This document shows, piece after piece, positions 1-62,734 of a DNA stretch of 64,000 nt (positions are counted from its first letter, which is position 1; the number at the start of each line of letters is the position of its first letter). Made by a program: the position numbers and the translations under genes. The notes under the pieces were generated by a model. That model was not told the origin of the DNA. It did no database searches and worked only from the letters and a program-made list of their open reading frames with translations. The stretch covers positions 806,001 through 870,000 of the forward strand of contig JAWMAR010000471.1 in assembly GCA_036785375.1 (NCBI GenBank), written 5' to 3'. The stretch is from Leucoraja ocellata (Eukaryota).

Positions 1-743
1 TTCTAATGAGTTAGTGAAAGCTCTCACCCACATTACGTTGATACATCGAGAGTACACAAAATGAAATACAGTTGTGACCCAGAGCAGGAGAAAGCTGCCG
101 GAGATGGCAAAGAGTAATATTATGGACCGTTTACGGCTTTCCGTCTCCGGGTCTCCACGAGTGAGATCGCGGAGCCTCCTGCGGACCCGATTGGCCATTA
201 CAATACATCTCGCCGTGTGCGCATTAAACAACAAGATGAAACAGAATGGAATAACTGGGGTCAACAACGCCTCGGTCCAAGAAAATGCGATCCATGCTGG
301 CAGGACATAGAACTCCGGTGGGATTCCGCAGCCCCACAGTAAACCATTATACACGTAGAGAGGATTGTAAGCGAAAGGCCAGGGAGCGTTCTGTAAGCAG
401 ATGAAGGTACTCAGGGTCACAATAATCACCGCCGCGCTTCTCTCGGTGCAGTATCTGGATCTCAGATTCTGTTTGGAGATGGCCACGAACCTATCAAATG
501 TGAAAGCGACCGTGAACCAAACGGAACAGTCTACGGCCGCGGCGGACAGGAAGAGAATACACTTGCACACAGGAGCAATGAACAGGATTGAGTTCATCCA
601 ATAAAGATCGGCAATTTGATTTAAAATCACTTCGCAGACAATCACGGAGAGGTCCGCCGTCGCCATAGCCACCAGGTAACAGGTGATGCATTTGGAGAGA
701 CCGCACTTTCCTCGGGACAGGATCACAATGGCCAGTAGATTCA
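1..743 (-). CDS. GPR139/GPR142-like class A GPCR copy 1, exon 2 (3' end runs off the window)
   Basis: ~99% identical to 61215-61957. Acceptor cccctAG|TG AAT CTA (V-N-L-L-A); TM3 FTFDRFVAI motif. Confidence 0.9.
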
Positions 744-1453
744 CTAGGGGAGCAAGAAAGAAGCAATGGTGATTATGGGGACAAAACTTCGAGTTGAGTG
801 ATGGATGGTCATATATTGTTATTTTGCTCGCTTTCGTAAATTGTGAAATGGACGGAGATTTCCTTTGGTTTGAATGTGATCCCTGATACTGCGCTCACGA
901 ACAAACATTCCACCTAACAGTGAATTAATCTACTGAGAAACAGTTTGAACGGAAGCGTAGAGTGAACAGTACGACTGAAGTTGGTGTTAATCGGGTGCAC
1001 ATTTCGGATCAGCATTTGCTTATTGGTTTGCAACATTTGCAGGGGGCGGTGTACAGTGGAGAATACCTGCACGCGATGCGGCGATCGTTGAAGAAAGTCC
1101 ACAATGAAAATTAATAGAAGCCATAAAAAGGGAGAACATATGGAAACAAAGATAGAGCGGGAAATACAATCGCCCGAGGTTTAAGCACATACAGCCTTTG
1201 TCGCTCAACCGACTTTGGCTGTTACTTCACTTAACAATATTGCAAGGATCATTCTAAACGCCAAACGGTGAAATGCAATGAAACCATACAATAACTATAT
1301 TATCTTCTGGTTATTTCCCCCAAACCCCATTCCCTGAATGCAGCCGAGTATCCAGTACATGTTGTCACATTATTTTAACTTAATCTTCAACATTACCGCT
1401 TCCCAATCAATTGGCCTCACGGTTATCCCACATACAGCCGTCAAGAGACATAC

Positions 1454-1520
1454 CGGGTACTCCAATTGATGCCAGGATTGGGTAATAATAATATTCAACC
1501 GACATGTGCATCCGACCCAT
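1454..1520 (-). CDS. GPCR copy 1, exon 1 (MGRMHMSVEYYYYPILASIGVP)
   Basis: ATG at 1520; ends G|GTATGT phase-1 donor, which joins exon 2 in frame inside TM1 (IGVP-V-NLL). Confidence 0.9.
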
Positions 1521-2189
1521 TTCTCCTTCAAAGCGACCTCGGAAACTCAGTACACAGCTTACAGATGTCATAGTGGGAGGTTAAACCGCTTGACATTTAT
1601 AACCCAAGAAGAAGATTCACGAGTTATTGTGATAACCTCCCTGTGGACATTCATTACGGATTTTGCTCCCGTGTGATGTTATACGACAACAATCACGAGG
1701 GTGGTCGTTCGCTGCACATGCACCAATTGAGCGCGTACAGAACTAACACACTGTAAAGTAGGATTGCGAAAAATATTTCGCAATTTAAATATGTTCCACG
1801 GAGGTTGCAGCTGCAGAAAGGTCCGACAGAAATATCAGTCAACAACACACGATCCAATGAGGAACTGCAGATGCTGGTTTAAACAGAAGGTAGACACAAA
1901 AAGCCGGACTAACTCAGCGGGACCGACAGCATCTTTGGAGAGAAATAAATGGTTGGCGGTTCGGGTCACGACCTTCTTCACTGTGAAGAAGGGTCTCGAA
2001 CCGAAACGTCACTCCAGCTTTTTCTGTCTATCGTTTGTTTATTCGGAAAACTTGAACTACAGTTCCCAGACACTGACCCAATCCCTTTACATTTACCACT
2101 ATCAATTTCTTCCCAGGTGCTTCCATTGGGCCCTGTTGAAACATACATTAGAAAGGTTCGTGTGTGTGTTCTTCTTTACATTCTTCACG

Positions 2190-2460
2190 GGGAAAGATCA
2201 GGGGGAAACTATGCCCTCTGGTCCTCGATGCACCTACTCTGGAAAGAGACTCGGCATCTTCCCGACCTTATCCTCTATAGTTTGTACATCTCGATAAGAA
2301 CACCCCTCATCCTGCTGCACTTCGTGGATAGAGACCCAGCCTACAGAACATCTCCTCATTACTCATACCCTCTCGTCCTGGAAACATGCTCGTATATTTT
2401 TTCTGAACCTTTTCAAGCTTGACAATATCTTTCCTATAACATGGTGTCCAGAACTTAACA
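2190..2460 (-). mobile_element. Degenerate CR1 LINE ORF2 fragment
   Basis: Translation FWTPCYRKDIVKLEKVQKKYTSMFPG...RLGLY resembles the CR1 RT C-terminal region. Confidence 0.75.
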
Positions 2461-59710: not shown

Positions 59711-61046
59711 AATGTTTCTCCCCTCTCAATCTGTGAAAGACTCAAAGCTGCAAATGAACGCGACGGAACGGGTCGCCTTCTGATTTACACACGTCATTCA
59801 GCAATTAAAATGTATTTAACCAATATAATCCTGAACACTGATAAACGCCCATTCATTGTAAGACGATAGAGAAAGGAGCACTCGGAGAGCTATTTTAGAT
59901 ATTTGGGTTTGAGAAGACTTCAGTCTTTAATGTCAAAGGGAACATCGAACAAGTCTATATGAATCGATATTTTAATGAACATTGAAACGATTCCGGGGAA
60001 ATTCCATAATTTACATTAACAGCTGTAAACTCGCTTTCTTCTCTCACTGCATTTCTCCAAGGAACTGCCTGCAACTTCGTGAGATAAAGAGATTGATCAC
60101 CATTTCAACATTAACTTACATATTTCACATTTCCTTAATTGATAACAGGAGAAAGAGTCATATATGTCTCTCTATGGCTTTTCATTGCAATGTAATATGA
60201 GTTCTGCGAGATGTTTAACGGGACCCTGCATAGCGTGTCAAAACGAATCTGGAAAATATTTTGCGAAAGAGACCGAAGTCACGGTTTAATGTAAATCAGC
60301 ATCTCCTGGAGCACATTTGACAATGAAGCAGGAATTAACACTACAGGCTCCACGTTTTGTTCCTGAATTTGAATGCTCAGATTTGACGTGTAATATTGTA
60401 AAATATTTGAAGAGTGAGTTTTATAACCAGACAGTATCCATTCGTTTATAATTAGTTTAATGGAATCTGAAAGCCCCTCTAAATGGGAATAACAGGATCT
60501 GTTGCAATGGGGCACCAAGAATACAGTGAAGCTCCCGTTTTGCTAAATGCAGTAGCTGGAATGTGGGAGACGCAGTCTACTTTAATGTCATCAAGTAAAT
60601 TTGTGACTTAGGCACCCACATGAGTGCTTCGAAAAATTAAAATGAGAAGGACGTGGAACGTATCGCGAACTTAGAGCTTTGGGCGTTTAGAGCCTAATGG
60701 GTTGGCCGCAGGATTGAAAGGAAATCGGGGATGTCGCGGAATTTTTCAATTGGAGATGCTGGACGCCGGCTCCAGTAGAAGTTAACACCGGGTTCCAGAC
60801 CACCGCCCCTGAGGAATTGGGAAACGGGCGGCGTTCGTTTTAAAGGGCAGGGGCTTGGGTCTGCGGAGCGGTGAGGGGGGCCGAAACGCCGGTAAGCCGT
60901 TACGTACAAGGGGATATTAATGTTTTAGCCGACAATTAGTGGCATTTTTTTAAAACGTTTTGGAAAGATAGGTGTGATTTTCGTTCAATGCTCCCTCTTC
61001 AACAGAGATCCACGAAGTCACACTCGGACAGACTTGTTGCCTGATG

Positions 61047-61957
61047 TCATTTTGAACCGGTTTTGGGAACTTTAACGAACTTTCTAATTAGCGCGACGGG
61101 GCATTGAAGTGCGTGAATGAACTGCTCTCTGAACTTCCCCTGGGTGACGGTGTAAATCAGTGTGTTTGTACATGTGTTCAACAGCTGCAGCAGGACTCCC
61201 GTTTTTTCGACTGTTTCTAATGAGTTAGTGAAAGCTCTCACCCACATTACGTTGATACATCGAGAGTACACAAAATGAAATACAGTTGTGACCCAGAGCA
61301 GGAGAAAGCTGCCGGATATGGCAAAGAGTAATATTATGGACCGTTTACGGCTTTCCGTCTCCGGGTCTCCACGAGTGAGATCGCGGAGCCTCCTGCGGAC
61401 CCGATTGGCCATTACAATACATCTCGCCGTGTGCGCATTAAACAACAAGATGAAACAGAATGGAATAACTGGGGTCAACAGCGCCTCGGTCCAAGAAAAT
61501 GCGATCCATGCTGGCAGGACATAGAACTCCGGTCGGATTCCGCAGCCCCACAGTAAACCATTATACAGGTAGAGAGGATTGTAAACGAAAGGCCAGGGAG
61601 CGTTCTGTAAGCAGATGAAGGTACTCAGGGTCACAATAATCACCGCCGCGCTTCTCTCGGTGCAGTATCTGGATCTCAGATTATGTTTGGAGATGGCCAC
61701 GAACCTATCAAATGTGAAAGCGACCGTGAACCAAACGGAACAGTCTACGGCCGCGGCGGACAGGAAGAGAATACACTTGCACACAGGAGCAATGAACAGG
61801 ATTGAGTTCACCCAATAAAGATCGGCAATTTGATTTAAAATCACTTCGCAGACAATCACGGAGAGGTCCGCCGTCGCCATAGCCACCAGGTAACAGGTGA
61901 TGCATTTGGAGAGACCGCACTTTCCTCGGGACAGGATCACAATGGCCAGTAGATTCA
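61047..61957 (-). CDS. GPR139/GPR142-like GPCR copy 6, exon 2
   Basis: Intact ~303-codon frame with DRF and NTCTNTLIY; stop at 61047. Confidence 0.93.
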
Positions 61958-62667
61958 CTAGGGGAGCAAGAAAGAAGCAATGGTGATTATGGGGACAAAA
62001 CTTCGAGTTGAGTGATGGATGGTCATATATTGTTATTTTGCTCGCTTTCCTAAATTGTGAAATGGACGGAGATTTCCTTTGGTTTGAATGTAATCCCTGA
62101 TACTGCGCTCACGAACAAACATTCCACCTAACAGTGAATTAATCTACTGAGAAACAGTTTGAACGGAAGCGTAGAGTGAACAATACGACTGAAGTTGGTG
62201 TTAATCGGGTGCACATTTCGGATCAGCATTTGCTTATTGGTTTGCAACATTTGCAGGGGGCGGTGTACAGTGGAGAATACCTGCACGCGATGCGGCGATC
62301 GTTGAAGAAAGTCCACAATGAAAATTAATAGAAGCCATTAAAAGGGAGAACATATGGAAACAAAGATAGAGCGGGAAATACAATCGCCCGAGGTTTAAGC
62401 ACATACAGCCTTTGTCGCTCAACCTACTTTGGCTGTTACTTCACTTAACAATATTGCAAGGATCATTCTAAACGCCAAACGGTGAAATGCAATGAAACCA
62501 TACAATAACTATATTATCTTCTGGTTATTTCCCCCAAACCCCATTCCCTGAATGCAGCCGAGTGTCCAGTACATGTTGTCACATTATTTTAACTTAATCT
62601 TCAACATTACCGCTTCCCAATCAATTGGCGTCACGGTTATCCCACATACAGCCGTCAAGAGACATAC

Positions 62668-62734
62668 CGGGTACTCCAATTGATGCCAGGATTGGGTAAT
62701 AATAATATTCAACCGACATGTGCATCCGACCCAT
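62668..62734 (-). CDS. GPCR copy 6, exon 1 (MGRMHMSVEYYYYPILASIGVP)
   Basis: Identical to 1454-1520; donor GTATGT. Confidence 0.92.

Follow-up and report, generated by a model that had tools for sequence, protein, structure and literature searches.

GPCR genes and antigen-receptor segments

In a stretch of 64,000 bases of the skate Leucoraja ocellata (assembly GCA_036785375.1, contig JAWMAR010000471.1, positions 806,001 to 870,000 of the forward strand), referred to here as the window, intact-looking orphan genes for class A G-protein-coupled receptors (GPCRs) sit between T-cell receptor (TCR) variable (V) segments and a NAR-TCR cassette. The window holds six GPCR copies, four of which are intact (GPCR2, GPCR3, GPCR4 and GPCR6); GPCR1 is truncated by the window start, and pseudo-GPCR5 is broken. 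These copies alternate along the DNA with a single TCR V segment (V1) and one NAR-TCR cassette, all bearing recombination signal sequences (RSSs), and the order along the window is GPCR1, V1, GPCR2 (inverted), the supporting V, joining (J), diversity (D) and NAR V elements of the cassette, GPCR3, GPCR4, pseudo-GPCR5 and GPCR6. The GPCR copies were located by tblastn with exon 2 of GPCR4 as query and the window as target, and their exons are the following.

1 to 743, minus strand: GPCR1 exon 2, truncated by the window start (tblastn match 10 to 744, amino acids 1-246, 64.6% to GPCR4; the end at 743 is inferred from a 61,214-base offset to GPCR6)
1454 to 1520, minus strand: GPCR1 exon 1, MGRMHMSVEYYYYPILASIGVP plus one base, then a GT donor
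11962 to 12031, plus strand: GPCR2 exon 1, MRWHAIRNVESWYYQILAAIVVL plus one base, then a GTAAGT donor; matched by 32 query peptides
14317 to 15227, plus strand: GPCR2 exon 2, intact, the sole plus-strand copy (tblastn match 14316 to 15188)
29600 to 30513, minus strand: GPCR3 exon 2, intact (tblastn match 29609 to 30514)
31904 to 31973, minus strand: GPCR3 exon 1
42584 to 43509, minus strand: GPCR4 exon 2, intact (tblastn match 42587 to 43510)
44889 to 44958, minus strand: GPCR4 exon 1
56974 to 58050, minus strand: pseudo-GPCR5, acceptor retained, one frameshift near 57890-57900, exon 1 not detected (tblastn match 57148 to 58051)
61047 to 61957, minus strand: GPCR6 exon 2, intact, 80% identity to the Amblyraja radiata protein P0003 (tblastn match 61089 to 61958)
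62668 to 62734, minus strand: GPCR6 exon 1

Exon 1, of 22-23 codons, lies 0.7-2.3 kb upstream of exon 2 in five of the six copies, and no recognisable exon 1 was found for GPCR5. Before the GT it ends, with one additional base, in ..IGVP in GPCR1, GPCR3, GPCR4 and GPCR6, and in ..IVVL (GTAAGT) in GPCR2. The exon-2 acceptor was read in GPCR2 to GPCR6 as AG/TG AAC (AG/TC AAC in GPCR2; the slash marks the splice point), and its position in GPCR1 was inferred from the same offset to GPCR6. Since the donor leaves one base and the acceptor supplies the two that complete a Val codon, the intron is in phase 1. Two-exon gene models in other species (e.g. P0003), which may themselves be computational predictions, agree with these splice sites. 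The five exon-2 translations submitted (GPCR2 to GPCR6) all matched Pfam 7tm_1, with 39.3-61.9 bits against a curated cut-off of 30.5, and in an alignment of 20 family members the motifs FDRF, at the end of transmembrane segment 3, and NTxIY, in segment 7, were invariant or nearly so. In GPCR5 the tblastn match is split over two frames, and a fragment of a long interspersed nuclear element (LINE) begins 16 bases upstream of the acceptor (at 58066). An earlier note on this DNA had described six two-exon class A copies with a phase-1 intron after ..IGVP and with FDRF and NTxIY motifs. The searches recovered that number, the splice sites and the motifs, with the ..IVVL end of GPCR2 as a variant and with exon 1 present in five copies.

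The antigen-receptor elements of the window are all on the minus strand.

5303 to 5341, minus strand: V1 RSS, consisting of CACAGTG, a 23-base spacer and ACAATAACT
5342 to 5643, minus strand: V1, a TCR V segment comprising the second leader part and the V exon; intact, with the conserved Cys and the motifs WYRQ and YYCAV
18330 to 18368, minus strand: supporting V RSS, consisting of CACAGTG, a 23-base spacer and ACAAAAACT
18369 to 18674, minus strand: supporting TCR V, leaderless, with a polypyrimidine tract and a cag acceptor
22415 to 22473, minus strand: NAR-TCR J, ending in ..YYEDGAGTTVTVTA plus one base, with a gtaagt donor
22474 to 22512, minus strand: 5' RSS of J (nonamer, 23-base spacer, heptamer)
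22842 to 22891, minus strand: NAR-TCR D, whose 15-base core (22870-22884) is flanked on the 5' side by a heptamer with a weak nonamer and on the 3' side by an RSS with a spacer of 12 bases (22869-22842)
23228 to 23265, minus strand: NAR V RSS, consisting of CACGGTG, a 22-base spacer and ACAAAAATC
23266 to 23559, minus strand: NAR-type V exon

A six-frame motif scan of the window yielded exactly three V-domain ends and one true J, and all three V domains matched Pfam V-set (V1, E 5.2e-16; supporting V, 1.4e-14; NAR V, 8.8e-9). RSS-like sites numbered 8, compared with 1.28 +/- 1.13 expected from 100 shuffles, and the segments with an RSS at their coding end are V1, the supporting V, the NAR V, D (on its 3' side) and J. 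The alternation of GPCR genes with RSS-bearing V and NAR-TCR elements and the order of the elements are as the earlier note had given them.

The best single-domain matches of the NAR V in the PDB were VNAR domains (E 3.3e-14 and weaker), and a search of a large protein collection, weakly informative at such a short query length, gave no match for it. The splice phase within the cassette is consistent, the J donor (G/gtaagt) and the acceptor of the supporting V (cag/AT) being both in phase 1, and the supporting V exon lies 3.7 kb beyond J. The cassette thus has a NAR-type V, a D and a J of its own with RSSs, and a J donor in frame with a leaderless supporting V. An in-frame ATG upstream of the supporting V was considered as a sign of fusion or read-through origin, and this was set aside because of the splice acceptor with its polypyrimidine tract and matching phase. 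The PDB ranking of V1 was dominated by multi-domain antibody chains, its search of the large protein collection gave one unnamed match, and V1 and the supporting V share 36% identity. At 5804-5831 (minus strand), about 160 bases upstream of the V1 exon, there is a candidate first leader exon for V1, with ATG and nine codons followed by G/GT; it is short and weakly hydrophobic.

Assembly continuity and the 61-kb repeat

There are seven N gaps in the window (among them 53654-53820), none of them inside an exon. Three gap-free blocks hold the GPCR genes: 1-17636, with GPCR1, V1 and GPCR2; 27480-49039, with GPCR3 and GPCR4; and 53821-64000, with GPCR5 and GPCR6. The cassette is more fragmented. 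The supporting V is on a 1.4-kb island with gaps on either side (17637-18239 and 19640-19778), the NAR V, D and J are on one 6.2-kb piece with a gap at each end, and J and the supporting V are separated by two gaps. With V1 in a gap-free block and the pieces of the cassette bounded by gaps, the position of V1 between two GPCR genes is contig-level evidence, and that of the cassette is scaffold-level evidence.

For an independent comparison we used whole-genome sequencing (WGS) contigs from three runs of the same species, all belonging to one study with two samples at most, placed on 17000-22900 across three of the gaps. Pieces matching at about 97-99% identity were present for the supporting V, the intron islands and the D/J region. 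Over 18240-18862, several mismatches fall in the supporting V exon and its RSS region (e.g. 18334, 18376 and 18601-18646); they could represent alleles or a second copy of the cassette.

Two repeats flank gaps in the transposon-rich DNA between GPCR4 and GPCR5. The first is a 720-base direct duplication (48242-48959 and 49254-49973, 96.5%) on both sides of the gap 49040-49253, whose right copy begins exactly at the gap end, and it probably corresponds to overlapping contigs left unmerged. The second is a 754-base inverted repeat (49970-50722 and 51034-51785, 96.8%) around the gap 50800-50990, which could be explained by head-to-head LINE tails or by an assembly fold-back. LINE fragments, of one or more families, also occupy the intergenic space at 34162-35718 (minus strand), 5963-6496, 21319-22062, 25811-26137, 36262-36954, 49978-50628 and 52095-52598. 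The longest LINE open reading frame (ORF), of 518 amino acids at 34162-35718 (minus strand), matches Pfam RVT_1 (E 8e-35), and the fragment at 21319-22062 matches RVT_1 too. Two other long ORFs, 16433-16927 (plus strand) and 9323-9973 (minus strand), encode repetitive, proline-rich or HPSI-like peptide runs, the second one without a Pfam match, and are probably transposon-derived or due to chance.

The window also contains the beginning of a second copy of a long repeat unit.

61215 to 64000, no strand assigned: start of the next repeat unit, matching window positions 1-2785 at 98.6%

The repeat unit has a length of 61,214 bases, and GPCR1 and GPCR6 occupy the same position in successive units, with seven differences over 735 bases of exon 2; because the two are repeat-equivalent, there are five distinct GPCR positions per unit. 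Such a repeat would fit either a tandem duplication of recent date or two haplotypes that were placed end to end without being merged. The earlier note had proposed that the GPCR genes were co-duplicating with the V array. The 61.2-kb period implies such a co-duplication with V segments, but the second unit is visible for 2.8 kb only, with GPCR sequence alone, and an unmerged haplotype may explain the repeat as well; this part of the proposal is thus only partly shown. At a smaller scale, the blocks of GPCR3 and GPCR4 match over 4.2 kb at 91%. These two genes are the product of a recent, GPCR-only duplication, that is, a birth, and GPCR5 is a dead copy; the birth-and-death family that the note had placed inside a rearranging V array is thereby seen in both its aspects.

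A chondrichthyan family of orphan receptors

A large protein search returned 1056 proteins at E<=1e-5. Among the 120 listed, 119 were named from cartilaginous fish, nearly all under the automatic name 'probable G-protein coupled receptor 139', and the closest named protein among the matches listed was from Leucoraja erinacea (88% to GPCR4). An exhaustive search of 1.84 billion representatives, clustered at 50% identity, gave 1025 proteins at E<=0.001, 179 at 1e-10 and 94 at 1e-30. The first matches outside the cartilaginous fishes were from coelacanth, one teleost and salamanders, at 29-30% identity. For window genes, these searches and the tree described below used exon 2 alone.

A single-sequence search of the PDB gave no GPR139 match at E<=0.001, its four matches being galanin and CCK-B receptors. 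With a profile of 20 family members, GPR139 ranked first (4.1e-17, 65.4 bits), followed by CCR5 (51.2 bits) and TRHR (45 bits), in a comparison in which GPR139 alone represented the GPR139/GPR142 group. GPR139 is thus the closest solved relative, by profile search only. The coelacanth and salamander relatives scored 70 and 53 bits against human GPR139, which was still their best solved match. The window GPCRs are, however, members of a large family found only in chondrichthyans and not orthologues of GPR139 or GPR142, because there was no single-sequence match to GPR139, they belong to a separate monophyletic clade and that family amounts to 94 clusters at E<=1e-30. The description of these genes as GPR139/142-like therefore stands in the sense of closest solved relative by profile, and falls in the narrow sense of paralogues.

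The tree comprised 73 rows: the four window exon-2 translations, four outgroups and 65 family proteins taken from the 120 listed. P0020, P0034 and P0039 were omitted because their models are fused or doubled, and so were, to limit the size, most of P0059-P0120. The chondrichthyan family came out as monophyletic, with 69 rows and support 98, and the four window copies all fell within a batoid-only clade (14 rows, support 98), nested in a subclade of 36 rows (support 98), or of 37 with one chimaera sequence (support 97). This 36-row subclade is sorted by taxon, so that separate expansions took place in batoids, carcharhiniform sharks and squalomorph sharks. The earlier note had named genome-wide scatter of the family as evidence that would speak against its proposal, and the outcome differs with the level considered. 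The whole family is dispersed, with members of Heptranchias perlo on at least 23 contigs among the 120 proteins listed, whereas the subclade of the window is concentrated, all ten H. perlo rows of the tree being on two contigs (29.8 Mb and 0.9 Mb) and the rest of the family on at least 21 more.

We compared the copies for signs of selection. In eight pairwise comparisons, all except GPCR3/GPCR4 and GPCR1/GPCR6, the ratio of nonsynonymous to synonymous substitution rates (dN/dS) was 0.25-0.40 at dS 0.6-1.2, and the older paralogue pairs are under purifying selection. For GPCR3/GPCR4 the ratio was 0.66, and for GPCR1/GPCR6, with seven differences only, it was 0.78. Between GPCR3 and GPCR4, 19 of the 24 core differences (first 275 residues) fell in three inferred extracellular loops, which together account for 52 of these 275 residues (hypergeometric p 1.7e-11), in a single gene pair and with loop limits that we drew ourselves, from class A motif anchors and hydropathy, after the differences had been seen. 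The family thus displays traits of a chemosensory-type repertoire: taxon-specific expansion, tandem copies (six in 64 kb, one of them dead) and, in one pair, variation focused on the loops.

Origin and meaning of the interleaving

We believe it probable that the window belongs to the V region of a TCR locus of alpha/delta type, where a locus-resident subclade of the chondrichthyan orphan GPCR family was amplified together with V and NAR-TCR units. The most likely mechanism is that the segmental duplications by which V arrays grow amplified the GPCR genes passively along with them. A V-bearing segmental duplication would carry GPCR genes along, as happens with trypsinogen genes in the TRB locus of mammals. 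The GPCRs, in turn, would be working receptors whose ligand-facing surface may be diversifying as in chemoreceptor-like families; their function need not involve T cells, and the receptors would keep a function of their own. The three V segments are all oriented toward lower coordinates, so that in deletional V(D)J joining any GPCR genes between a chosen V and its D/J would be lost from that allele. Such a loss from the rearranged T-cell allele would be a by-product and not a purpose.

Several observations weigh against this interpretation. The alpha/delta label of V1 rests on the neighbouring NAR-TCR cassette and not on a typing of V1 itself, and the loop pattern carries the provisos given above. 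The GPCR4 gene was looked for in sequencing runs recorded as RNA, and none contains the stretch; the closest Logan protein, P0001, was considered as a transcript and rejected, as it reads through the intron and is thus an unspliced genomic ORF. At single-copy parts, the WGS contigs show a divergence of about 1-2.4% from the window, much like that seen between the two 61-kb units. A contig bridging the gaps was sought and none was found among the 24 WGS contig pieces listed; the cassette is joined to the GPCR blocks only across Ns. Lastly, a fusion with a V-set domain was sought in ten over-long gene models of the family and found in none of the ten. Two such models from other species, P0124 and P0183, were fused, one to hemopexin repeats and the other to a voltage-gated sodium channel, which suggests that such genes are neighbours of family members elsewhere. 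Because these fusions were found instead of V-set ones, many members of the family are likely to lie outside antigen-receptor loci, and TCR loci are not the only home of the family as a whole.

Three other explanations were weighed. The GPCR copies might be decaying passengers without a present function, which would fit the one pseudogene among six, the relaxed ratios of the youngest pairs (GPCR3/GPCR4 and GPCR1/GPCR6) and the lack of RNA runs with the GPCR4 stretch. We regard this as improbable, since four copies keep complete reading frames and intact splice sites, the older pairs are constrained at considerable dS (0.6-1.2), and the class A motifs are invariant or nearly so across the 20 family members aligned. 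Slightly more improbable, in our opinion, is that the GPCRs are functionally tied to T cells, either through the open chromatin and enhancers of the locus in thymocytes or because V(D)J deletion would give clone-specific receptor sets. The genes are indeed physically within the V array, five of the six copies are oriented like the V segments, the intact copies are under constraint, and in H. perlo the subclade seems confined to a single locus. Nevertheless, no RNA run contains the stretch, the remaining family is on many other contigs, deletion on a rearranged allele leaves the other allele whole, and non-immune families are known to reside in TCR loci without a T-cell role, as described for trypsinogens in PMC2685407. 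The least probable of the three is that the interleaving is wholly or partly an assembly artefact, with loci mis-scaffolded or haplotypes placed side by side: the seven N gaps, the island of the supporting V, the lack of an independent bridging contig among the 24 pieces listed, the repeats flanking the gaps at 49040 and 50800 and the 98.6% likeness of the window ends would all agree with it, but V1 and its RSS lie between GPCR1 and GPCR2 in 17.6 kb without a gap, and in order, strand and splice phase the parts of the cassette are what a real one would show.

Passive amplification of a resident GPCR subclade within the V array, the explanation that we prefer, has partial parallels in known systems. 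Olfactory receptor genes, a large birth-and-death GPCR family, adjoin the V segments of the mammalian TRA/TRD locus. They flank that array, whereas the window GPCRs are interleaved, and the two families are unrelated beyond both being class A. The other parallel is the TRB locus, in which, according to PMC2685407, there are 5, 8 and 20 trypsinogen genes in cattle, human and mouse, respectively, with conserved synteny. Both cases involve a multigene family other than antigen receptors that resides within a rearranging TCR locus and varies in its duplication among lineages. In the window, in contrast, the family is one of GPCRs, the locus is of alpha/delta type, and between the copies stand individual V segments and NAR-TCR cassettes. 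The cassette at 18330-23559 agrees with the doubly rearranging TCR delta of cartilaginous fish as described in PMC12227049; the cassette is thus ordinary, and it is its neighbours that are new.

With regard to the receptors, human GPR139 (PDB 7VUG and related entries) is like the window family in its class A membership and its very short N-terminus, besides being its best solved profile match, and unlike it in that the window family is a clade of its own with at least 94 clusters at 50% identity. According to PMC6504862, further orphan subtypes, named GPR210A/B, exist beside GPR139 and GPR142 in coelacanth, gar and other fishes. The nearest non-chondrichthyan matches of the window family are likewise from coelacanth, teleost and salamander and could be GPR210 genes, and they are few per genome in comparison with the large chondrichthyan family. 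A literature search found nothing on GPCR genes in shark or skate TCR loci, or on a GPR139-like chondrichthyan family, although figures or supplements, such as the locus maps of PMC12227049, might show such genes. That paper maps the TCR alpha/delta and immunoglobulin heavy chain complex of cartilaginous fish, and its main text, as far as it was available, has neither 'GPR' nor 'G protein'; PMC12208981, on GPR139, has nothing on sharks or paralogues in its accessible text. The arrangement is apparently undescribed, in agreement with what the earlier note had supposed.

If real and conserved, it would be a second clear case, after the TRB trypsinogens, in which the duplication of an antigen-receptor locus carries an unrelated multigene family along, and one that involves the oldest living lineage of jawed vertebrates and its unusual NAR-TCR cassettes. 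Those who annotate shark and skate TCR loci should in that case expect such GPCR genes between V segments. The finding also draws attention to a GPCR family found only in chondrichthyans, with about a thousand database proteins and 94 clusters at 50% identity, that is annotated as 'probable GPR139'. In the part of PMC11979771 at hand, the catshark is described as having only 2 canonical olfactory receptor genes and 6 olfactory receptor-like ones, with no mention of 'GPR'. Given so few classical odorant receptors, a large orphan family with variable outer loops would be a natural candidate for the missing chemoreception or for another ligand-diverse function. More speculatively, and as a rather unlikely possibility, cartilaginous fishes, in which classical odorant receptors are very few, may have in the 'probable GPR139' family a large undescribed receptor repertoire with diversifying loops instead, one subclade of which would be multiplying inside the TCR alpha/delta V array and might be read out either in a tissue of the senses or, if the locus controls it, in lymphocytes.

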